This document shows, piece by piece, positions 3,392 to 54,724 of a stretch of 64,000 nucleotides of DNA. The notes beneath the pieces are model-generated. The model saw only the letters and a program-made list of their open reading frames with translations, searched no databases and was not told the origin of the DNA. A program made the position numbers and the translations under genes. Source of the stretch: Macrostomum hystrix (Eukaryota; Animalia; Platyhelminthes). Each line of letters opens with the position of its first letter. The stretch's first letter is position 1. The stretch lies in the NCBI GenBank assembly GCA_950097015.1, contig CATNEN010000029.1, positions 4,092,001-4,156,000 on the forward strand, given 5' to 3'.

Positions 3392-4413
3392 AGTGATTCT
3401 CAGATAGCTGTGACAGATAGTCACGCGATGCTTAGGTTGCGAGCGCTAAGTCAGCTAATTTTCCAAGAAGCCTCAAATCTGTCGAGTTGGGATAGAACCG
3501 AGAATTCGCTGAGCAAGAAATTATTGTGGGCAGGAGAAGAAAGAGAAGAAGTGTGAAGAAACTTCACTGTCAGTAGCTACAGCCGCCCCCCCAACCCATC
3601 TCAGCCATGTGGCGAAGCTCTTCGCTTATTAAAGCTGTGAAGATCCGTGATCCCCTTCTGCAGCTAGCCGAATGAGAAATCTAGGAAGGGACGGACAAGG
3701 ATTAACAGCTTATGAATATCGGCCGGCCCTGCAGTCCCAATTTCCATTTAAATTAGTGTTTGGAATGGCCTGGTAGAGGAAATTCATCGAACCGGCGAGC
3801 GAAAGACAACTTGGAGAAGCAGAACAGGGGAAAAGCGTGGAAAGCAGATTTGCTAGCCGTGACAGCTACAAAATACGGGCACTCTACATGCATTCAGGAG
3901 GCTATTCTGACACTTCTAGTCGCATAGTTACAAGAGGCGACAAAAACTTGTCGCTTGTCAGTTGTCAGCATGATCAATCCTGTCACTTTGCCAGCTGCAA
4001 GAATCTGTATAGCTTGCTGAAGTGGCAGTTCCGCCATTGCTGCAGAGCAGAGGAACAAATATTTGTCTATTAGATAGTAGCAATCGGGTAATGTCGAGTG
4101 TCCCCCAAAGTGTTTAAAAGCTAACTTTGATCAAGTGCTGGATAAGTGAGGAATAACAGTTGTGTAGCTCCACCACTTACAGCCTATGCGCATGGATTAC
4201 AGATTGACTTGTAATTCTAGAATACTAGGCCCATGCTGTGCGATCTAGCAAAATTTTTTTATAAACACACCTGCAATGTCCGATGGAAGAATTTTAAGGA
4301 TGCTGTACCGAGATATGGGCCTGTCTAGATGTATCTACATTTCAGAAAATATAGTCTGTCTGTTTATTTTCTTGTCTTATTCAGATTCCTGTGCCGTACC
4401 TATTGTTTTAGAT

Positions 4414-6590
4414 TGTCCTATTCATACTGTGTTCTATTCTACTCCATCCTGTCCCATTCATACTGTGTTCTATTCTACTCCATCCTGTCCCATTCATACT
4501 GTGTTCTATTCTACTCCATCCTGTCTTATTCATACTGTGTTCTATTCTACTCCATCCTGTCCTATTCCTAATGTGTTCTATTCTACTCCATCCTGTCCCA
4601 TTCATACTGTGTTCTATTCTACTCCATCCTGTCTTATTCCTACTGTGTTCTATTCTACTCCATCCTGTCCTATTCATACTGTGTTCTATTCTACTCCATC
4701 CTGTCCTATTCCTAATGTGTTCTATTCTACTCCATCCTGTCCCATTCATACTGTGTTCTATTCTACTCCATCCTGTCTTATTCCTACTGTGTTCTATTCT
4801 ACTCCATCCTGTCCTATTCCTAATGTGTTCTATTCTACTCCATCCTGTCCCATTCATACTGTGTTCTATTCTACTCCATCCTGTCTTATTCCTACTGTGT
4901 TCTATTCTACTCCATCCTGTCCTATTCATACTGTGTTCTATTCTACTCCATCCTGTCCTATTCCTAATGTGTTCTATTCTACTCCATCCTGTCCCATTCA
5001 TACTGTGTTCTATTCTACTCCATCCTGTCTTATTCCTACTGTGTTCTATTCTACTCCATCCTGTCCTATTCCTAATGTGTTCTATTCTACTCCATCCTGT
5101 CCCATTCATACTGTGTTCTATTCTACTCCATCCTGTCTTATTCCTACTGTGTTCTATTCTACTCCATCCTGTCCTATTCCTAATGTGTTCTATTCTACTC
5201 CATCCTGTCCTATTCATACTGTGTTCTATTCTACTCCATCCTGTCCCATTCATACTGTGTTCTATTCTACTCCATCCTGTCTTATTCCTACTGTGTTCTA
5301 TTCTACTCCATCCTGTCCTATTCCTAATGTGTTCTATTCTACTCCATCCTGTCCCATTCATACTGTGTTCTATTCTACTCCATCCTGTCTTATTCCTACT
5401 GTGTTCTATTCTACTCCATCCTGTCCTATTCCTACTGTGTTCTATTCTACTCCATCCTGTCCTTTTCCTAATGTGTTATATTCTACTCCATCCTGTCCTA
5501 TTCCTAATGTGTTCTATTCTACTCCATCCTGTCCTTTTCCTAATGTGTTCTATTCTACTCCATCCTGTCCTATTCCTAATGTGTTCTATTCTACTCCATC
5601 CTGTCCTTTTCCTAATGTGTTCTATTCTACTCCATCCTGTCCTATTCCTAATGTGTTCTATTCTACTCCATCCTGTCCTATTCATACTGTGTTATATTCT
5701 ACTCCATCCTGTCCTATTCCTACTGTGTTATATTCTACTCCATCCTGTCCTATTCCTACTGTGTTATATTCTACTCCATCCTGTCCTATTCATACTGTGT
5801 TCTATTCTACTCCATCCTGTCCTATTCATACTGTGTTCTATTCTACTCCATCCTGTCCTATTCATACTGTGTTCTATTCTACTCCATCCTGTCCCATTCA
5901 TACTGTGTTCTATTCTACTCCATCCTGTCCTATTCATACTGTGTTATATTCTATTCCATCCTGTCCTATTCATACTGTGTTCTATTCTACTCCATCCTGT
6001 CCTATTCCTAATGTGTTCTATTCTACTCCATCCTGTCCTATTCCTACTGTGTTCTATTCTACTCCATCCTGTCCTATTCCTACTGTGTTCTATTCTACTC
6101 CATCCTGTCCTATTCATACTGTGTTATATTCTACTCCATCCTGTCCCATTCATACTGTGTTCTATTCTACTCCATCCTGTCCTTTTCATACTGTGTTCTA
6201 TTCTACTCCATCCTGTCCTATTCCTACTGTGTTCTATTCTACTCCATCCTGTCCTATTCCTACTGTGTTCTATTCTACTCCATCCTGTCCTATTCATACT
6301 GTGTTCTATTCTACTCCATCCTGTCCTATTCATACTGTGTTCTATTCTACTCCATCCTGTCCTATTCCTACTGTGTTCTATTCTACTCCATCCTGTCCTA
6401 TTCATACTGTGTTCTATTCTACTCCATCCTGTCCTATTCATACTGTGTTCTATTCTACTCCATCCTGTCCTATTCCTACTGTGTTCTATTCTACTCCATC
6501 CTGTCCTATTCATACTGTGTTCTATTCTACTCCATCCTGTCCTATTCCTACTGTGTTCTATTCTACTCCATCCTGACCTATTACTACTGT
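4414..6590. repeat. 36-bp minisatellite CCTATTCATACTGTGTTCTATTCTACTCCATCCTGT (~60 copies)
   Basis: Direct reading; open in several frames on both strands. Confidence 0.97.
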
Positions 6591-7070
6591 TCTATTGTGC
6601 AAACAAGAGTTTTTTCAACTCAGTAAAATGCAAGAAGTAATTTATTCATATACTAAACTTTTAACATGAGCCGTATGATGTTTTCTCCTATCACTAAGTC
6701 TCTTATATGCTATAACGAATGGGTCATTCTTCTGTTTTAAAATCTCTGCTAACCAAGTAGCTCTGGCTATCGGTTCCTGAACTAACTTTCTCAGCATGCG
6801 GTCGGTACTAACCCACATTAACTAGCTCGTAACATCCATCTGTCCGTGATATTATATAGCAATTCTATATTGGACTATATATTGGCTTTGGATTGACAAG
6901 TCAAAACTGCAGGCAGTGAGTTTAGAGTGATCAGCTGCAGTTCGCATTATGGGGCACACACTGATATTGTAACAGTTGCACCGGCCATCGGTCTTAAGTG
7001 CCCCAGAGTCAGCAGGGGGTGCCGCACTGACGAATGTCCAATAAATAGCTATCAGGAGCGCGGATTTAAG

Positions 7071-14852: not shown

Positions 14853-15397
14853 GTTACAAAGTCGACAGGCATTAAATCTAGTTTTCCTGTACATGCGTTG
14901 CACCAAAAAATTCGATGCAATGACAATACAGAATTTGTTCTGTTTGCGCAACCTGTAAAAAATATTTAAAGCAGTTTTATCAAACAGTTTAGTTTTTTTA
15001 CATATTCTCAAAGTGAAAAACCTCAAACCAATTTAACAAAGATTGTTTACAATGTACCTATTTGTGCAATTTGCAACTAACCCAACCCATGTATAATTGT
15101 CAAAAATTGTAGTCAAAATTGACAGCTTTATGCGCGCACAAATATACATATATATAATTAACATTGAGCTGCGAAATGAAATAAAATATAAATCAAATCG
15201 ACATTTTACAGTTTTTTAATCACGAACGCTAAGCATGTGTACATATACACTGTATATTTATATGATTTAATGAAAGTGAAATAAGTCAATTCACCAAGTC
15301 AATCGTCACCTTCATTATCTGAATAACAAGCGAATTATTTATTTAACGAGATTATAACTGCAACAAGAACTTCAAACAGATAGTGGAACAACGGTTG

Positions 15398-16395
15398 AAA
15401 AATCTCAACACTGTTTTTCAAAGTCAGTCTCAAAATCTCAAGACTGTTTTCAAAGTCAGTGTCAAAATCTCAACACTGTTTTCAAAGTCACTGTCAAAAT
15501 CTCAACACTGTTTTTCAAAGTCAGTCTCAAAATCTCAACACTGTTTTCAAAGTCAGTCTCAAAATCTCAACACTGTTTTCAAAGTCAGTCTCAAAATCTC
15601 AACACTGTTTTCAAAGTCAGTGTCAAAATCTCAACACTGTTTTCAAAGTCACTGTCAAAATCTCAACACTGTTTTCAAAGTCAGTGTCAAAATCTCAACA
15701 CTGTTTTCAAAGTCAGTGTCAAAATCTCAACACTGTTTTCAAAGTCACTGTCAAAATCTCAACACTGTTTTCAAAGTCAGTCTCAAAATCTCAACACTGT
15801 TTTCAAAGTCAGTGTCAAAATCTCAACACTGTTTTCAAAGTCAGTGTCAAAATCTCAACACTGTTTTCAAAGTCACTGTCAAAATCTCAACACTGTTTTC
15901 AAAGTCAGTCTCAAAATCTCAACACTGTTTTCAAAGTCAGTGTCAAAATCTCAACACTGTTTTCAAAGTCAGTCTCAAAATCTCAACACTGTTTTCAAAG
16001 TCACTGTCAAAATCTCAACACTGTTTTCAAAGTCACTGTCAAAATCTCAACACTGTTTTCAAAGTCAGTGTCAAAATCTCAACACTGTTTTCAAAGTCAC
16101 TGTCAAAATCTCAACACTGTTTTCAAAGTCACTGTCAAAATCTCAACACTGTTTTCAAAGTCACTGTCAAAATCTCAACACTGTTTTCAAAGTCAGTGTC
16201 AAAATCTCAACACTGTTTTCAAAGTCACTGTCAAAATCTCAACACTGTTTTCAAAGTCAGTGTCAAAATCTCAACACTGTTTTCAAAGTCAGTGTCAAAA
16301 TCTCAACACTGTTTTCAAAGTCAGTCTCAAAATCTCAACACTGTTTTCATTGGCAGTCTTAAAATCTCAACACTGTTTTCATAGGCAGTCTTAAA
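15398..16395. repeat. 32-bp minisatellite AAAATCTCAACACTGTTTTCAAAGTCAGTGTC
   Basis: Direct reading; all three + frames are open. Confidence 0.96.
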
Positions 16396-18749: not shown

Positions 18750-19272
18750 AATGGCCTAATCCTTTGGATCTAGGATGTCAATGGCCTAATCCTTTGGATC
18801 TAGGATGTCAATGGCCTAATCCTTTGGATTTGGGATGTCAATGGCCTAATCCTTTGGATTTGGGATGTCAATGGCCTAATCCTCTGGATTTGGGATGTCA
18901 ATGGCCTAATCCTTTGGATTTGGGATGTCAATGGCCTAATCCTTTGGATTTGGGATGTCAATGGCCTAATCCTTTGGATTTGGGATGTCAATGGCCTAAT
19001 CCTTTGGATTTGGGATGTCAATGGGCTAACTCGGGATTGTTTACGTAAATGGCCAATCCTGGGGATTTGGGATCTTAATGGCTGACCCAGCGGATTTGGG
19101 ATCTAAATGGCCAATCCTGGGATTGGGGATCTAAATCGCCCATCCTGGGGATTAGGGATCTTAATGGCTAATCCTGTGGATTTGGGATCTTAATTGCCAA
19201 TCCTAGGATTTGGGATCTAAATGGCCAATCCTGGGGATTATGGATTTTAATGGCCAATCCTGGGGATTAGGG
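18750..19272. repeat. 30-bp minisatellite AATGGCCTAATCCTTTGGATTTGGGATGTC in UBE2O intron 9
   Basis: Direct reading. Confidence 0.93.
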
Positions 19273-19333
19273 ACGTAAGTGAGCCAAAAAAGGGATCAAG
19301 GGCCCAAACCGCTAGCATTTTGAGTAATCTCAC

Positions 19334-19870
19334 CTGTAACAGATTGGACTCGCCAGGCGCCCACCTCTCTGTGCCCTGACCGTCCCAGGTGCCTAGCAGT
19401 GAGACGCACACCTTGCCGCACTCGTACAGATTCGGATTCAGCCGGCCGGAGCACATTGACCGGTAGAGCAGGCGTGGCGGCTGGGCCGGATAGGCGGGCG
19501 GCAGATGCAGATCGAACAGGAACAGTGCGCCAGAGTATGGCGTACCTGCTGGGCCTTCAACCAGCACGGCCATGAGGTCCATGCGATCCTCGTAGGCTTT
19601 GACGGTGACGCCGAGCGGCAAATGATCGCCTAGGAGGGCCAGCTCGCGCCGCCAGGCTGTCACGAAAGGCTTGGGCGGCAGGCCGGTGCCAGTAGAGAAG
19701 GCCGACTCTGTATAGTGCAAGTGCGTTGCCGGGGCGCTCTCCACCAATAGGAAGATGCCGCCGCCTTCGACTGCCGCAGCGGAGGCGCCTTTCGGCTTAT
19801 CGACAACAGATGCCGGAGCTGTTGAAGAGGCCGGCAGCGACGAGGAAACCGGGCAATCTGATGATGAGGC
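19334..19870 (-). CDS. UBE2O: UBE2O exon 9, UBC catalytic domain
   Basis: RELALLGDHLPLGVTVKAYEDRMDLMAVLVEGPAGTPY..FLFDLHLPPAYP..GRLNPNLYECGKVCVSLLGTW with the catalytic Cys in KVCVSLL; CAG|gtgaga donor. Confidence 0.96.
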
Positions 19871-20411: not shown

Positions 20412-20700
20412 CATTGATTGATGCCTAAAATGGCCCAGATGTGCAGCCGACAGCACAGCCGCAGCTATTGCGCGGCAAATCTGAGGGCTGCGAACGGCTG
20501 TTCAGTCCATGGACTGGGGGAACGCCACTCCCACCCTCAATTACCCTAGCTGATGCTGGTACCCATTTAACAGCTGGGTGAACTGAAGCAATGCAGAGTT
20601 AAGTGTCTTGCTAAAGGACAAAAATTGTTTCAGTAGAGCCGGGAATCGAACCCCGACCTTTAATCCGTGATTCCTACGCTCTAATCACTAGGCTACAACC
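20412..20700 (-). mobile_element. SINE family A copy
   Basis: Reverse complement closely matches 25490-25790, including a ~70-nt identical core; tRNA-like head ends at 20700. Confidence 0.85.
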
Positions 20701-22037
20701 TCCTCAAACCTCCTCATCCTGCACTTAGTTTTCTAGGAGTTTTCTAGTTTTTGTTTTCTAGGAGAAAACAAAAAAGAACAGTAGTCAACGTCCTAAAACT
20801 ATCGATCTTATGATTACTTTCCAGTCTGAGTTTGCTAAAAGACACAAACACCCACCGGAGCACTTACACTTTTATACCTGAATGCCTGAGGACTTGTAAG
20901 ATTAGAGTCAAGCATAAGAAAGATAATTTTGTGAAGACTAGTCTAAAAAAGAAAAAAATACTTAAAAACAAAGGGCTTAGATAACTGCGCTATGTGATCA
21001 GTCATATATTGCTACTCTTAAAAGGCAAATCTATCTGATAGTCTCAAGTGGTGGTGATTTTGAGTAGGACTTAAAGAGGATTGTCTTCTAAGTGAGACAG
21101 AAGGAGATGGTTACCCTTGCAGAATTAAAAATAGCAATTGTCCAGTTAACTTTTTCCAGTACCAGTTATCTTTTAAGTGCAATGATTTAAGAGTAAAAGT
21201 CAAATTGGGATCCACAATGAAGCTAGGTGCAGCAAAACACCAGGTTTACACTTTTAACTCCATATTGATTGACACGCTGTCAACTAAAGTGCAAAGAAAA
21301 TATCTCTGTTGCCCATCGCGTGTAAAATTATAGATCTGAACGAATTTAAGCCGTCCGTCGCGCTAAACATTTTATTGAATGCTAACTATAACTGGGCTTG
21401 AAGAATGCATTGATTTTTCTTTCCCCTAAGAAAGAGTCGGGGCATCGATTTTCAGAGGAGCCGCCATAAGAAAAGCGAAGGAAAGACTTTTGACTTCGCT
21501 TTTCCGCTGCTTCGTTCTAGTGCAATCTATTATCTTCTAGGAGGAGCTGACAAAAAAGAAGAATACAGTCCTGTAGCTTCGATTTCTTTTGTGCCGCAGC
21601 AAGCCGGGATGAAACCATCCGACATACGAGACCAGCATTGACTGGATAGCAGCCGTCGCAATATTAGTAGCTTAATTATGGAAAAGTCACATAACGGATA
21701 ACAAGAGTATAAATCGATGGTAAACTGCAGAGGCATCCGAGCATTTTCCAATCAATAATTTCGATCCTCTTATTACTAAAGATTAATTTCATTTTCATTC
21801 CGACTAACGTTTTAATTCAGTGGTGGCGTTTAGTTTATTTCAATGCAGAAGGTCAAAATTACTGGACATTTTAAACGTCACTCCTCATTCCTCAACCAGG
21901 TGTGACCAGTTTAAGCTGCAAAGGCCAACAAGATGTTCCCTTTCCAGTTCAAGAAAGAAACTAATTATCTGAAAAGCAAGCTGAAACGTTTCCCCACGAG
22001 TTAGTCTGCATCAAACGCGGTAATAAGGGAAGGCTAA

Positions 22038-22267
22038 TGACGTCAGAGACACAAAAGAGTCAATATCTCTTACATAAGATCATAGAGCAAGGCTAGTGAA
22101 TAGAACTTTCAGAGAAAAATGCGTTCCACCAAGCATGCCTGATGGGATTGGATGGGCGAAAACCAATGGACCACTGACTAAGAAGACGCCCATCCCGAAT
22201 TGGAAACGCCCGCATACGAGTCCTGACTAGAGCTCCAATCGCGTCTTGCTATGTGAAGAATAAATAG
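22038..22267 (+). promoter_or_regulatory. Probable promoter of the neuropeptide gene (CRE, CCAAT, TATA-like)
   Basis: Perfect CRE TGACGTCA at 22038-22045, CCAAT boxes near 22163 and 22235, and AATAAATAG near 22259, 170-400 nt upstream of the ATG. Confidence 0.45.
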
Positions 22268-22435
22268 AGGCTGAAAGTCGACGCGACAAAGGCCCCACTG
22301 AAGCGGCGACATTATTCTCTTTTCGGCCTACATTGCTTTGGCACAGCAAAACAGGCGCACGGCGGTAAAAGCTAAGTCTTTGCCAACAGCGTATCAGGAT
22401 TAGAGAAATACCTACAACTATTCTGTGCGTGAGTT

Positions 22436-23263
22436 ATGAAACACCTAAACAGGCGCACTAACTACGTTACGCTGCTAGTGGCTTTGGTCCTTGCTTCGAC
22501 CACCACTGCGTTGCCATCGGAGGAGCACAAACTGGGACGGCAAGAGAATCGAGAGTCGGAGAAAGAAAGTGATGGACTTTCAGAGCTGGAGGTGCGCTAT
22601 CTGATGCAGGCGTTGGGAAGCATTGATAGCCCAACAGTGAACGGTCGTGATATTAACTACGACAAGGAAGACGGCGATGATGACCTAGAAGTGGACGCTG
22701 ACGATCTCAAGACTAACGAAGACAAGCGGGCTTTCCATGCTCTTCGTGGCAAGAAGTTTACTCCGCTTCGTGGCAAGAAGTTTACTCCGCTTCGTGGCAA
22801 GAAGTTTACTCCACTCCGTGGCAAGAGGTTCAGCCCGCTTCGTGGCAAGAGGTTCAGCCCGCTTCGTGGCAAGAGGTTCAGCCCGCTTCGTGGCAAGAGG
22901 TTCAGCCCGCTTCGTGGCAAGAGGTTCAGCCCGCTTCGTGGCAAGAGGTTCAGCCCGCTTCGTGGCAAGAGGTTCAGCCCGCTTCGTGGCAAGAGGTTCA
23001 GCCCGCTTCGTGGCAAGAGGTTCAGCCCGCTTCGTGGCAAGAGGTTCAGCCCGCTTCGTGGCAAGAGGTTCAGCCCGCTTCGTGGCAAGAGGTTCAGCCC
23101 GCTCCGTGGAAAGAGGTTCAGCCCGCTCCGTGGAAAGAGGTTCAGCCCGCTCCGTGGAAAGAGGTTCATCCCGCTCCGTGGAAAGAAATTTAACTCTAGC
23201 CCGGTCAGTGACGATGAGTTTACACAGCTCTTTGGCAAGAGGTTCAATCCACTCAGCGATTAA
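22436..23263 (+). CDS. Secreted neuropeptide prohormone (FSPLRamide/FTPLRamide repeats), intronless, nested antisense in UBE2O intron 7
   Basis: Basic N-terminus plus hydrophobic signal peptide (VTLLVALVLASTTTA-LP), acidic spacer, then KR. 19 amidated short peptides each followed by G-K-K/R: AFHALR, 3x FTPLR, 14x FSPLR, FIPLR. Then FNSSPVSDDEFTQLF-GKR and FNPLSD. Repeat variation includes synonymous third-position changes. Confidence 0.93.
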   Translation: MKHLNRRTNYVTLLVALVLASTTTALPSEEHKLGRQENRESEKESDGLSELEVRYLMQALGSIDSPTVNGRDINYDKEDGDDDLEVDADDLKTNEDKRAFHALRGKKFTPLRGKKFTPLRGKKFTPLRGKRFSPLRGKRFSPLRGKRFSPLRGKRFSPLRGKRFSPLRGKRFSPLRGKRFSPLRGKRFSPLRGKRFSPLRGKRFSPLRGKRFSPLRGKRFSPLRGKRFSPLRGKRFSPLRGKRFIPLRGKKFNSSPVSDDEFTQLFGKRFNPLSD

Positions 23264-23876
23264 ACCCGCTCTCTGATTAAGGCAACACTGAAAGAATCGG
23301 AAGTATGAAGGCATGCGAGGCCTTTCTTGTTCGTAAATGTTAAACCGTTTGTAAGCAGTTTATAAGAGACAGACAGTTGACAAGCAAAGGTGTTCTTAAC
23401 AACTTGAATATTCCCTCCCACGAGCATAACACATTTTAACTCTATACCTCTTTTATCTCACACCGTCGCGAAAAAATAATTTTCTCCATCAGAAGAGAAA
23501 TCTAAGCAAGCAATTCGCACCAGGCAAATAATGCAATATAAAAACTTAAGCATACGCGCCCAGATCATTTTGTTGCGTATGCGATTTATTGAGGTTTTCT
23601 TGTCTAAATATATTGAGAAAAACTATATCACTGACAGGATTCTCAGCAAATGAAAGCCTTTATTTTATGAAGTAACCGAACTAATCGCATTAAGAATTAT
23701 TAGATTTAACACTAGGTTAGGTCGAATTTTACATCACCCAATTTAATGCTGAAGTCAACAGGCCTTCAATCGATTCTTGCGATTGTTTATTGGATTTGTT
23801 TCTCTGCTCTCAAAGTAGCGAACTAGTCTACGCTTGTAGAAAGGGGCAACATCGTGTGGCTGGGTACGCTTAATAA

Positions 23877-24356
23877 GCAGCACAAGAGCGTACTGGCAGA
23901 CGCGCGCACTGGCAGAGGCGCGCACCGGCACAAAAGCGCAGCAGCACAAGAGCGCACTGGCAGAGGCGCGCACCGGCACAAAAGCGCAGCAGCACAAGAG
24001 CGCACTGGCAGAGGCGCGCACCGGCACAAAAGCGCAGCAGCACAAGAGCGCACTGGCAGAGGCGCGCACCGGCACAAAAGCGCAGCAGCACAGGCGCGCA
24101 CTAGCAGAGGCGCGCACCGGCACAAAAGCGCAGCAGCACAAGAGCGCACTGGCAGAGGCGCGCACCGGCACAAAAGCGCAGCAGCACAAGAGCGCACTGG
24201 CAGAGGCGCGCACCGGCACAAAAGCGCAGCAGCACAAGAGCGCACTGGCAGAGGCGCGCACCGGCACAAAAGCGCAGCAGCACAAGAGCGCACTGGCAGA
24301 GGCGCGCACCGGCACAAAAGCGCAGCAGCACAAGAGCGCACTGGCAGAGGCGCGCT
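23877..24356. repeat. 48-bp GC-rich minisatellite CACAAGAGCGCACTGGCAGAGGCGCGCACCGGCACAAAAGCGCAGCAG (~10 copies)
   Basis: Direct reading; ~600 nt downstream of the neuropeptide stop. Confidence 0.95.
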
Positions 24357-25464
24357 GTCAGACTTATGCGCAAGAGCGCATTATTTACTCGCTAAGGCAC
24401 AAGCGCGCACTTCATTTAATGGAATTTAAATGAAAAAGAAAAGTTGTAATCAAAGCTGTAGTGCACAAGGGGTGGTGGGTTAGGGTGTAAACAGAGGTAC
24501 TTTAGGTACTCTGCGCATTGGTCGCATCGACGAGTTAGCATTTCTCACTTTGACGTCGCACATTGTTGATGGATTGCTGGATCATCATCAGCAGCCAGAC
24601 CAAGACTTGCAGCCAGACATGCCGGGACACGGCCTGCCCAGTCAGCCGCAACCGGGATTTCTGCAGCTGCTCTTTTTCTTCGTGTTACATCTTTGTTCTA
24701 ACATACATGTAAAGCACTGGTCGAAAGGATTTTAATTCGATTTCCTTCGTACAAATACAATCGACTACTTTGTGACAGACGATGGAGCAACTTGACTGCT
24801 TTTATTTATTGCCTATCGCGCTTGTGCCAGACTTTGACATAAAATCCACAGGCGCGCTTATGATGGCAACCCGTGTGGCTCTACGGGAGACCAAAAATCG
24901 ATTGAAAGAAGCGAGTCCATTAAACAGGTTAATAAAGTATTTAGAAGTGCTGTCTGGTTACTTTTAGATGTGAAAATCTTCTTTTCACAAGCCAATTCCA
25001 TTTGGCCAGGTCATAAGCTCCAAGGAGTTAAGCTGCCATCATCTTTGACATCGCTGTCAGCATATACTTAGGCATGAGTAGATTCATGGATCGGGTGGGA
25101 GAAGGAGAGAGTAGGCCTGAAAGATGATCAGGGCTTAAGCCACAGAGCAGCAGATCCTTGAGAGTGGTCCGTAAGCGTGTTCACAATCATTGGGAAATAA
25201 ATTAACTGCAGGCTTATAATCCAGAAGCCAGTCAGACTATCTCTAAAAGCTAAAGATTAGTGCTATTAAAATCAAAGCTTTGAAGTGCGATATATAGTGC
25301 AACCCATTAAAATCTGTGAAAAATTCTACCTAAATTACAGGTAAAATGTTTGTAATTAGGAAAATTAGCAGCTCTGGAAGAGCTACTCGTAGTTAAGACC
25401 CAACTCAAGCCAACAACCCGCAGTAATTTAGCGGGACTTTACTTTAGCTATATACTTTGCTAAG

Positions 25465-25793
25465 GTTGGTTGCCTAGTGGTTGCCTAGAGGTTGTAGCCT
25501 AGTGGTTAGGGCGTCGGACTAACGACTTGAAGGTCGGGGGTTCGATTCCCGACTCCACTGAAACAATCTGTCCTTTAGCAAGACACTTAACTCTGCATTG
25601 CTTCAGTTCACCCAGCTGTTAAATGGGTACCAGCATCAGCTGGGATAATTGAAGGTGGGTGTGGCGTCCCCCCAGTCCATGGACTGAACAGCTGTACGCA
25701 GCCTTCAGATGCGCCGCGCAATAGCTGCGGCTGTGCTGTCGGCTGCACATCTGGCCCGATTGGGGCAGGTGTAATCAATTATTATTATTATTA
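25465..25793 (+). mobile_element. tRNA-derived SINE, family A, full length with target-site duplication
   Basis: A box TAGCCTAGTGG, B box GGTTCGATTCC, central GCAAGACACTTAAC..CAGTTCACCCAGCTGTTAAATGGG domain and (ATT)n tail; TTTGCTAAG duplicated at 25456-25464 and 25794-25802. Confidence 0.88.
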
Positions 25794-28615: not shown

Positions 28616-28672
28616 TCGATATCAAACCTGCGAGCTCGATGTACTACTGAAAAATAAATACAGGGCACTCAC

Positions 28673-29218
28673 CTCAGGCACATCGAGCTGTTGAGCAGAC
28701 AAATCAGTTTCAGACGCAGCAGACGCAGTTGCTAGGGGCCCGGATTGAGCCAAACTGGTAGCCGACTGCCACAGGCTCCTAATAGAAGTTGGCAAAGGAT
28801 TGGACACTCTCGGCACAAATGTTGGCACAACTCGCTGATCGATCCCGCCGCCCTCTCCGAAATCGTTTCGCCGCAGCATGAGGGCGTGCCGCAACGGCGC
28901 CAGCTTGTCAGGCATAGATTCAGGATCTGTGAAGGCCTCCAGGCAGTGAGCATCGGCTGTGAGTAGGCGCAGATTTTTTGAGAACTGCAGCAACGCGGCC
29001 CGCTGGCTAGTGGTGGCGCAACGGCGAAGGCAGGTGGGTCGGGAGCGCAGGTCGTGCAGCAGGGTGCGCAGGCTGTGTGTTGTTAATAGAATAGTCTCCA
29101 AAGCCTGGTGTACGCTGTGAACAACTGTGGGCGTGACAATGCGGCAGGCGTTGGCTGTGAGGGCTTCGCGCACACAGTCGGAGATGAGGCGCAGCGGCTC
29201 CTGCAGTTGCGCACCGAC
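28673..29218 (-). CDS. UBE2O: UBE2O exon 7
   Basis: ctactcag|GTC; 546 nt open, phase 0/0; GAG|gtgagt donor. Poorly conserved linker or coiled-coil region. Confidence 0.75.
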
Positions 29219-29279: not shown

Positions 29280-29512
29280 AATCCAGATTCCATATCACTG
29301 AATCCAGACTCCATATCACAGAATCCTGATCCCATATCAGAGAATCCTGATCCCATATCACAAAATCCAATAGCACAGAATCCAGATCGAATATCACAGA
29401 ATCCAGACCCCGGACCATAGAATCCAGACCCCGGACCATAGAATCCAGATCCCAGACCATAGAATCCAGACCCCGGACCATAGAATCCAGACCCCGGACC
29501 ATAGAATCCAGA
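29280..29512. repeat. 21-bp minisatellite GAATCCAGACCCCGGACCATA in UBE2O intron 6
   Basis: Begins within ~10 nt of the exon 6 donor. Confidence 0.88.
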
Positions 29513-29519
29513 TGCTGAC

Positions 29520-29894
29520 CTTTCTAACGCACTCCCATTCGTCTGAGCAGGACGCATGATGCGGCAGCCAGCAATTTAAACCGGCGCCGGAAGTTTCATT
29601 GCCAGCCCCATCCTCTGTCGACATCAGAACAACGTCTCCGTCGGCCGTGACCTGGACGGCAACGCCGGCTCGGCCAGCGTCCTCCTCTAGATCGGCGGTC
29701 TCCACGCTTTCCGTCTCCCAGGACGCCGTGTCTTCGTCGTCGTCGTCAGCGGCGTCGTAGTCGTTGAAGAAGTCGGACGACTCGCTAGCAGTGCGATGCT
29801 CCGGCCCGCCGCCAAGCAGGCCTTCAAGGCTGAACAGATCGCAGGGCCACACATCAGCCTCTTCACCGTCTGACCAGACAACGCGAACGCGACC
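29520..29894 (-). CDS. UBE2O: UBE2O exon 6
   Basis: cgcctag|GGT; GRVRVVWSDGEEADVWPCDLFSLE..DDDDEDTASWETES (cf. KVEVVWADNS..DSWETD); AAG|gtcagc donor. Confidence 0.88.
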
Positions 29895-32130: not shown

Positions 32131-32177
32131 GCGTACAGTAGCATCCATATCTATCTTTTAAAATATTGATAACTTAC

Positions 32178-32664
32178 AGTTTCCAGCACTACTCGAACAA
32201 CTTCGCCCAGTCGAATTGTCGAAGCAGACGATGACTCGGCGCTGGAGTTCGTTGCGGCAGCGGCGGAAGCGAATTCTCCTCCGATGTCCATAGCTGCCGA
32301 GCTGTTTGATTCGGCAGCTTCCGAGCCCAATTGATGTTGCTGCAACTTCAGCATCACAATTGTCCTAGGCCTGTACTCGTAGATTGAGAACTCTTTCAAA
32401 TCGATGGTGCTAACCAGTTCGGCCGGTCCGCACTGCTCAACTGTGAGGCCGGGAGATTCACGATACCACTGCAGGCGGGCCAGCTTCTGGTGAACATCAT
32501 TTTCTAACACCAGGGCGTAGCGATCCGGCGGGCTCGACGACTGGAATTCGGAATTCTCTCCGGTCCCAGCTCCGTCAGACAACAGTTTTTCCTGCTGGCT
32601 ACTGAGCACAAAGTCTCCAGGAAAGAACTGGTTCTCCATGAAGTCATCGAACGGTACCAGATCG
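32178..32664 (-). CDS. UBE2O: UBE2O exon 5
   Basis: caacag|C GAT; DLVPFDDFMENQFFPGDFVLS..YALVLENDVHQKLARLQW..IYEYRPRTIVM; ACT|gtaagt donor, phase 0. Confidence 0.92.
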
Positions 32665-32709
32665 CTGTTGATTGTTGGCGGCGGGGTAAAGCATGGGATT
32701 TATAATTCC

Positions 32710-53930: not shown

Positions 53931-53993
53931 AGTTGAGAAATAAGATATTTTTATGTTTGTAGACTGTTACAAGCCACTCCGATATTTTCGCAG

Positions 53994-54561
53994 ATTCTTT
54001 GTTGACGATGCCGAAGTGGCCGCCAGTCTGTCCGACTCCGTCGACTGCGGCCGGGTTAGCGAGCGCCTGCTGCGCATCGTCTACCAACCCCAGGCTCTGT
54101 TCCGCGTCCGGCCCGTCACCCGATGCACCTCCAGTCTGCCCGGCCACGCCGAAGCCGTTTTATCAGCGGCCTTCTCGCCGGACAGTCGCCATCTAGCTAG
54201 CGGCTCCGGCGACGCCACCGTTCGCTTCTGGGATCTGGCCACCGAGACGCCGTTGCACGCCTGCCTCGGTCACAAGCACTGGGTGCTGTGCATCGCCTGG
54301 TCTCCGGACGGGCGCCGATTGGCCAGCGCCTGTAAGCGCGGCCAGATCTGTCTCTGGTGCCCGGACACCGGCAAACAGATTGGCAAGCCGCTGGCTAGGC
54401 ACAGCCAGTGGGTTACTAGTCTGGCCTGGCGGCCGCTGCATCTAGACGCCGAGTGCCGCCTATTAGCATCGGCTTCTAAAGATTGCACTGTGATATTGTG
54501 GGACACCATTGTTGGTCAGGTTAGCCGGGTCATCAGCGGTCACGAACAGGCTGTGACACAG
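53994..54561 (+). CDS. NLE1: NLE1 exon 2, WD40 repeats
   Basis: ttcgcag|A TTC; IVYQPQALFRVRPVTRCTSSLPGHAEAVLSAAFSPDSRHLASGSGDATVRFWD..GHKHWVLCIAWSPDG; CAG|gtttgt donor. Confidence 0.97.
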
Positions 54562-54600
54562 GTTTGTTCTCTCATTTATCTTATTTTTATTCTACTGTTA

Positions 54601-54724
54601 AGCCCCCAAGTCTTCTCCCTGCGGCTGCGCCTCAAATGAATGTGGCCTCACTGCGGAATCGAGCTCAGGAACCTTGGTGCGAGAGACAAACGCGTTGACC
54701 GCTCTTGCACTCACCCACACCCCA
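54601..54724 (-). mobile_element. SINE family B 5-prime fragment in NLE1 intron 2
   Basis: Reverse complement matches the first ~120 nt of 44398-44520. Confidence 0.75.

Follow-up and report, generated by a model that had tools for sequence, protein, structure and literature searches.

Does the repetitive open reading frame (ORF) at positions 22436-23263 of a 64,000-nt stretch of the Macrostomum hystrix genome (assembly GCA_950097015.1, contig CATNEN010000029.1, positions 4,092,001 to 4,156,000; the whole stretch is hereafter called the window) encode a peptide signalling system of its own, or a divergent member of one that is already described? The initial annotation of this locus had proposed a new neuropeptide family, with a pyrokinin core whose last two residues are swapped and which thereby obtains a tachykinin- or natalisin-type ending. 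Our analysis suggests that this is not a new signalling family and that the peptides are most likely flatworm counterparts of the tachykinin-related peptides (TKRPs) of molluscs, annelids and arthropods. More specifically, we favour, with moderate confidence, a Macrostomum TKRP precursor in which the array has expanded a shortened F-x-P-L-R-amide form.

According to the ORF listing and its translation, positions 22436-23263 of the plus strand, stop codon included, encode a prepropeptide of 275 amino acids which is organized as follows.

22436-22510, plus strand: predicted signal peptide, residues 1-25, cut after TTA (hydropathy, -3/-1 rule).
22511-22723, plus strand: acidic spacer, residues 26-96, followed by Lys-Arg at 22724-22729 (residue counts).
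22730-22750, plus strand: AFHALR-Gly, the first and most tachykinin-like peptide (comparison of the FHALR core).
22757-22828, plus strand: three FTPLR-Gly units with KK or KR (dibasic cutting, translation).
22829-23164, plus strand: fourteen FSPLR-Gly-Lys-Arg units, 11 of them identical in DNA and 3 with two synonymous changes.
23165-23188, plus strand: FIPLR-Gly-Lys-Lys unit; FIPLR shares 4/5 residues with FIPSRa of Octopus and Sepia.
23189-23236, plus strand: FNSSPVSDDEFTQLF-Gly, a predicted amidated 15-mer unrelated to the main peptide.
23243-23260, plus strand: C-terminal FNPLSD, without Arg-Gly (dibasic cutting).

Dibasic cleavage of this precursor yields 14 FSPLRG, 3 FTPLRG and one copy each of FIPLRG, AFHALRG and FNSSPVSDDEFTQLFG, exactly the ORF and the counts that had been claimed at the outset, as well as the C-terminal FNPLSD, which had not been listed and which looks like a last unit that may have decayed. 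KR or KK sites flank every Gly-extended peptide, and 15 junctions additionally fit R-x-K-R, the furin-type consensus. The signal peptide, called by hydropathy and the -3/-1 rule, has a basic n-region (K2, R6, R7), a hydrophobic core at V11-A20, for which the Kyte-Doolittle 9-mer maximum is 3.2, and small residues in front of the predicted cut TTA|LP after residue 25. Within the spacer, 22 Asp/Glu stand against 8 Lys/Arg over residues 26-95 (70 residues). The description as a canonical multi-copy amidated-peptide prohormone, with a plausible signal peptide, an acidic spacer, dibasic sites and Gly amide donors, is thus borne out. Disorder is expected for a prohormone of this kind. When the window is translated in all six frames, F-x-x-[LM]-R-G-basic-basic is encountered 19 times, always within the precursor ORF, while shuffles of the rest of the window give an expected count of 0.02.

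At the DNA level the array consists of 18.5 copies of a 24-bp unit with 97% matches and no indels (Tandem Repeats Finder). Since this 24-bp tandem repeat holds several open frames on either strand, it might also be a non-functional intronic minisatellite that is open in one frame by chance. This we regard as extremely improbable, given that a signal peptide and an acidic spacer lie upstream and in frame, that the units vary in a largely synonymous manner within a complete processing grammar, and that a discrete transcript is made from the locus while flanks in the same intron are silent. The further long ORFs that cross the array on either strand are a consequence of its repetitive sequence. 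The transcript and a possible promoter element are located as follows.

22316-23594, plus strand: minimum transcript extent, unspliced where checkable (Logan contigs, four runs).
22260-22266, plus strand: TATA-like element ATAAATA (pattern search), which lies about 50 bp before the start of the most 5' RNA contig and may serve as promoter element.

Logan contigs of four public runs map only to this region of about 22316-23594 around the precursor gene. In the flanking bins 21000-22205 and 23680-24617 the depth is 0 in all four runs, while it is 100-340 on the gene in the same-species runs X5 and X6. As the 1.3-kb island is covered and its flanks are not, the runs are RNA and not DNA, and the lack of a transcript, which the initial annotation had named as a ground for dismissal, does not apply. 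Wherever the sequence is unique, the RNA contigs are colinear with the genome and without splicing. The gene is therefore a single exon as far as is visible from unique sequence, and the plus strand inside UBE2O (see below) gives rise to a single-exon mRNA of about 1.3 kb. From the interior of the array the RNA assembly yields only pieces of 36-54 nt; because short-read contigs collapse the array, its copy number is known from the genome assembly alone. A pattern search found no canonical AATAAA at the 3' end of the transcript; AATATA is present at 23535. In RNA contigs of runs labelled as another organism, a C>G difference at 23200 would change the fourth residue of the predicted 15-mer from Ser to Arg.

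Among the 19 units, the codons for Phe (TTC/TTT), Pro (CCG/CCA), Leu (CTT/CTC) and Gly (GGC/GGA) differ only synonymously, the Arg and the first Lys are invariant in all units, and the eighth codon encodes Lys or Arg. Amino-acid differences are limited to position 2 (His, Thr, Ser, Ile) and to Ala in place of Pro in unit 1. This pattern is what selection on a processed F-x-P-L-R-Gly-basic-basic unit would predict. As 11 units are identical in DNA, the expansion of the array is recent or the array is under homogenization. Language-model features group the protein with multi-copy neuropeptide precursors. The locus very probably represents a real, expressed precursor of amidated peptides.

With regard to the family to which these peptides belong, all 19 Arg-Gly units carry Phe at position -5 and Arg at position -1, the F-x-x-x-R-amide arrangement which is expected for TKRPs and which the initial annotation had correctly recognized as a tachykinin/natalisin-type ending. 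In the tachykinins of protostomes and in natalisins, the Arg-amide C-terminus is strictly conserved (PMC9521575), and the precursor found here is secretory, multi-copy and equipped with dibasic sites and Gly amide donors, as is further expected of a TKRP. The most informative unit is the first one. Its core, FHALR, is identical to that of Patinopecten TK-1/2 (YGFHALRa, NYGFHALRa), and the whole hexapeptide AFHALR matches Ixodes TKRP-1 (AFHAMRa) at 5/6 positions, with a single conservative Leu/Met difference; closely similar are the chemically isolated Anodonta tachykinin pEYGFHAVRa and the FHAVRa endings of Lottia TK-4 and Platynereis TK2-2 (all PMC6880623, Table S1). For the four distinct pentapeptides compared with 33 cores, an exact core match is expected by chance with a probability of about 5e-5 at ordinary residue frequencies, and of 0.025 if a Phe at -5 and an Arg at -1 are presupposed. 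As AFHALR-amide thus combines the scallop core with a near-identical tick hexapeptide, a tachykinin type is favoured over a new family.

The proline form, on which the proposal of a new family had been based, is likewise found within published mollusc sets. Oct-TKRP-IV ends in FVPTRa, Oct-TKRP-VII and Sepia TK-4 in FIPSRa and Sepia TK-6 in FAPSRa, while the Crassostrea tachykinins are FGFAPMRa (Cragi-TK1), ARFFGLRa and FRFTALRa (Cragi-TK3) (PMC6880623, Table S1). FTPLR shares 4/5 residues with the FTALR of Cragi-TK3, as does FIPLR with FIPSR. Two oyster tachykinins are listed with masses in a peptidomic survey (PMC4200219), and a receptor responsive to the endogenous oyster tachykinins has been characterized according to a review (PMC6880623).

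Several observations weigh against the assignment to the tachykinin type. At position -3, 18 units have Pro and one has Ala, and the canonical central Gly occurs in none; in a structure-activity study in Aplysia, substitutions of the central Gly sharply raised the half-maximal effective concentration (EC50). This Gly is typical but not universal, as 5 of the 26 spiralian cores in a curated table of accepted TKRPs have Ala and 4 have Pro at this position. The peptides are also short. While AFHALR-amide has six residues, as does the tick peptide, the other 18 have five and thus fall below any member of Table S1, in which the TKRPs comprise 6 to 12 or more residues (PMC6880623), and shorter abalone peptides were less active (PMC9521575). 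The earlier characterization of the products as bare pentapeptides hence holds for 18 of the 19 Arg-amide peptides and fails for AFHALR-amide. It should also be noted that the assignment relies on motifs of five to six residues. Finally, word-indexed searches in which the whole protein, its non-repetitive N-terminal 104 aa and a 65-aa piece of the array served as queries retrieved no orthologue, an absence from protein sets that is weak evidence since the array interrupts short-read assemblies and the gene lies antisense in an intron; and in the word-indexed and HMMER searches the regions outside the peptides could be aligned to no tachykinin precursor.

These points might instead indicate a lineage-specific, macrostomid neuropeptide family which arrived at F-x-x-x-R-amide by convergence, without tachykinin ancestry and with another receptor. 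The missing central Gly, the pentapeptide length and the failure of three word-indexed searches and of an exhaustive HMMER search to retrieve an orthologue or alignable homologue are in line with this idea, as is the fact that many flatworm neuropeptides are unmatched in other phyla (PMC3261222; bioRxiv 10.64898/2026.10.10.758126). We nevertheless consider it rather unlikely. An exact FHALR-amide core together with a near-identical tick hexapeptide is improbable by chance, and accepted spiralian tachykinin sets include variants with Ala as well as with Pro at position 3. In addition, missing alignable flanks are to be expected, because tachykinin precursors generally share nothing but the peptides.

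Two database matches, P0062 and P0002, speak for the tachykinin type. When public assemblies were queried for the exact protein, no record was returned. The exhaustive HMMER search gave 538 matches, nearly all of which result from the 8-residue periodicity; screening the top 150 of these for motifs left four real precursors (P0062, P0002, P0054 and P0076). P0062, the best-scoring genuine neuropeptide precursor of that search, is of the F-x-P-M-R-Gly type: an unnamed 459-aa protein (L001, Logan SRR31186252 contig, gene 592-1971) with 14 D-D-P-F-x-P-M-R-Gly-Arg/Lys-Arg units, which would suggest a precursor of natalisin or tachykinin type. P0054 and P0076 are two leucokinin-like precursors. P0002, a scorpion tachykinins-like protein and the only named match of the word-indexed search, contains ten AFYAMR-Gly-Lys-Lys units and one SFMPLR-Gly-Lys-Lys, and the AFHALR context NEDKRAFHALRGKK aligns to DEDKRAFYAMRGKK of this protein. 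Neighbours in the ESM Atlas are generic neuropeptide precursors only, all below 0.9.

In Pfam, the precursor matches only the Bradykinin family PF06753, exactly at the cut-off (20.7 bits) and on a stretch of 7 residues. Bradykinin is a nonapeptide from kininogen or skin secretion with a free C-terminal Arg. We rejected a bradykinin identity, as each Arg of the Macrostomum units precedes a Gly amide donor and a dibasic site and is not a free C-terminal Arg, and as the RPPG part is missing. The match is regarded as coincidental and reflects frog-skin bradykinin-related peptides ending in ...GFSPLR or ...GFTPLR.

The pyrokinin side of the initial annotation could be put more precisely as a derived pyrokinin/sCAP-type (PRX-amide) precursor, a counterpart of the planarian Smed-ppl-1, in which Pro-Arg-Leu turned into Pro-Leu-Arg and then spread through the array. 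FSPLR and FSPRL agree at 3/5 positions and have the same composition, and Smed-ppl-1, which is built in the same way from a signal peptide, a spacer and C-terminal tandem units, encodes (Y)FSPRM-Gly-Lys-Arg and YFSPRL-Gly-Lys (PMC2953531, supplementary file 6). Such an origin appears highly improbable to us, as P-R-X-Gly occurs in no unit and every Arg-Gly unit ends in L-R-Gly, so that the C-terminal residue which defines the receptor class is Arg-amide, as in tachykinins. The swap would require two coordinated codon changes by way of Pro-Arg-Arg or Pro-Leu-Leu, and the least homogenized unit, AFHALR-Gly, is devoid of Pro and matches FSPRL at 1/5 positions, compared with 5/5 for tachykinin cores. 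The Pfam model PBAN gave no match to the precursor even at E<=10. A residue-swapped pyrokinin core is thus not upheld.

If the peptides are of tachykinin type, their production and history might be envisaged as follows, the processing steps being taken from the general prohormone pathway. The signal peptide would direct the precursor into the secretory pathway, where prohormone convertases would cut after each KR or KK, a carboxypeptidase would strip the basic residues and the amidating enzyme would convert each C-terminal Gly to an amide. The predicted products are one AFHALR-amide, three FTPLR-amide, 14 FSPLR-amide, one FIPLR-amide and one FNSSPVSDDEFTQLF-amide, along with free FNPLSD. The first copy may have retained the spiralian tachykinin core F-H-A-L-R-amide, while the later copies would be derived from it by a change from Ala to Pro at position 3 and from His to Thr, Ser or Ile at position 2. 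These derived copies would have lost any N-terminal extension and have been multiplied by recent unequal crossing-over. By analogy with the family, the peptides would activate a rhodopsin-class G-protein-coupled receptor (GPCR) of the tachykinin-receptor type on neurons or muscle. The receptor may have co-evolved with the trimmed peptides, or a different receptor may now be used by the proline copies. It might even be speculated that one gene provides two classes of ligand, in that AFHALR-amide keeps the ancestral tachykinin-receptor activity and the 18 Pro pentapeptides act on a second, duplicated receptor. We consider this unlikely to a considerable degree; if true, it would be an independent flatworm replay of the arthropod split between tachykinin and natalisin within a single precursor.

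The very high copy number and the high RNA depth could further point to an exocrine role, i.e., a product secreted by gland cells that acts outside the animal or on mate or prey, similar to the tachykinins in the saliva or venom of octopus, mosquito and wasp. Exocrine peptides of the tachykinin type are known (PMC9521575; PMC6880623), and in planarians the adhesive glands express some of the prohormone genes (PMC2953531). However, the exocrine tachykinins cited end in FXGLM-amide or FXGMR-amide, while none of the Macrostomum peptides has the central Gly, the first peptide bears the core of endogenous scallop and tick peptides, and the architecture is that of an ordinary neuropeptide precursor. 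An exocrine function thus appears improbable compared with an endogenous tachykinin-type role.

According to a review of 2019, flatworms had so far yielded no tachykinins (PMC6880623), and none is listed in later flatworm neuropeptide surveys as far as these are searchable. On the receptor side, phylogeny has assigned receptors of a monogenean flatworm to the tachykinin type (PMC9645230), and weak hints at the level of BLAST exist for planarian and schistosome receptors of this type (PMC3261222). Judged by its peptides, the gene would be the first credible tachykinin-type precursor in Platyhelminthes, with a peptide that appears unusually trimmed and amplified. A flatworm tachykinin would close a gap in the known phyletic range of a peptide system that is among the oldest in bilaterians, and its extreme form (pentapeptides, no Gly, 18 copies) probes how far the tachykinin pharmacophore can be trimmed. 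A credible flatworm ligand also constitutes a defined and cheap set of synthetic peptides for orphan flatworm GPCRs, including the drug-target receptors of parasites. In agreement with the initial annotation, which recognized no named precursor with this motif, we found no neuropeptide use of FSPLR-amide, FTPLR-amide, PLR-amide or LR-amide in the searchable literature. McVeigh 2009, reportedly the one paper to have screened Macrostomum expressed sequence tags for neuropeptides, lies outside that literature, so that the gene may already bear an 'npp' name.

The genomic setting of the gene is defined by two exons of UBE2O and by the two arms of an inverted repeat.

19247-19747, minus strand: UBE2O exon with the UBC catalytic domain (Pfam UQ_con, E=6e-17; PDB UBE2O chains, E=3e-43, residues 951-1079 of 1292).
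32154-32699, minus strand: UBE2O exon with the N-terminal SH3-B domain (Pfam PF23043 SH3-B_UBE2O, E=4.2e-7, 30.7 bits against a cut-off of 22).
20422-20620, no strand assigned: inverted repeat, left arm, 199 nt, 92% complementary to 25569-25767.
25569-25767, no strand assigned: inverted repeat, right arm (complementarity to the left arm).

UBE2O spans at least 13 kb of the minus strand. Because its SH3-B exon (32154-32699) and its UBC exon (19247-19747) bracket the peptide gene, the latter is, by these domain matches, nested antisense between UBE2O exons. Three large minus-strand ORFs located between these exons (23755-24333, 28622-29173 and 29394-29852) gave no match in Pfam or PDB and are not recognizable as UBE2O exons. 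The arms of the inverted repeat are 4.9 kb apart and bracket the peptide gene as well.

Three further regions of the window attracted attention. A WD40-repeat ORF on the plus strand at 53953-54639, for which the THOC3 beta-propeller is the top Pfam model (E=4.6e-39, under the model's own cut-off), is probably an exon of a WD40 protein. At 4276-6640 (plus strand), two long overlapping ORFs of 766 and 689 aa fall in a region where GC skew and AT skew are both strongly negative; Pfam gave no match for the 766-aa ORF, and the stretch may be a repeat or a low-complexity coding region. A 333-aa ORF at 15383-16384 (plus strand) has a marginal Pfam match to AMP-binding_C_2 (E=1.1e-5, 26.1 bits against a cut-off of 25).

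Compared with known systems, the Macrostomum peptides have the C-terminal F-x-(A/P)-x-R-amide in common with spiralian TKRPs, and in both cases they are encoded by multi-copy precursors that combine a signal peptide with KR/KK sites and with Gly as amide donor. Mollusc TKRPs comprise 7-13 residues with N-terminal extensions and occur in 2-9 copies, and most sets include F-x-G-x-R-amide. In contrast, the Macrostomum precursor holds 18 bare pentapeptides and one hexapeptide, has no Gly copy, and its units abut without spacers; it also stems from a different phylum, in which no tachykinin had been reported (PMC6880623). Among the chelicerates, Ixodes TKRP-1 (AFHAMRa, two copies) has the same hexapeptide length and the same N-terminal Ala as AFHALR-amide, and chelicerate TKRPs have the same flanks (D-K-R ... 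G-K-K). The Centruroides 'tachykinins-like' protein XP_067133141, with its ten AFYAMR-Gly-Lys-Lys copies, even includes an F-x-P-L-R-Gly unit (SFMPLR-Gly-Lys-Lys). Arthropod TKRP copies are, however, separated by acidic spacers and Pro copies are a minority, so the likeness across phyla is confined to the processed peptide.

Natalisins, which form the sister group of tachykinins in panarthropods, share the literal F-x-P-x-R-amide, of which the Macrostomum precursor has 18 units, as well as many paracopies and a strictly conserved Arg-amide. Drosophila natalisins comprise 15-24 residues, though, and signal through a separate receptor, NTLR, that arose within the panarthropod lineage, and natalisins have been reported from arthropods and tardigrades only (PMC6880623). 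We therefore rejected a natalisin orthologue, as that lineage has its own receptor and the host is a flatworm; the Pro form found here would be a parallel one. The planarian Smed-ppl-1 (pyrokinin prohormone-like-1), likewise from a flatworm, shares the build of the precursor and the F, S, P, R, L composition of the peptide. It ends in Pro-Arg-Met/Leu-amide on a 9-residue unit with a leading Tyr, comparable to the ..FPRM-amide of mollusc sCAP, whereas the Macrostomum peptides have Leu-Arg-amide in every copy and a first copy without Pro.

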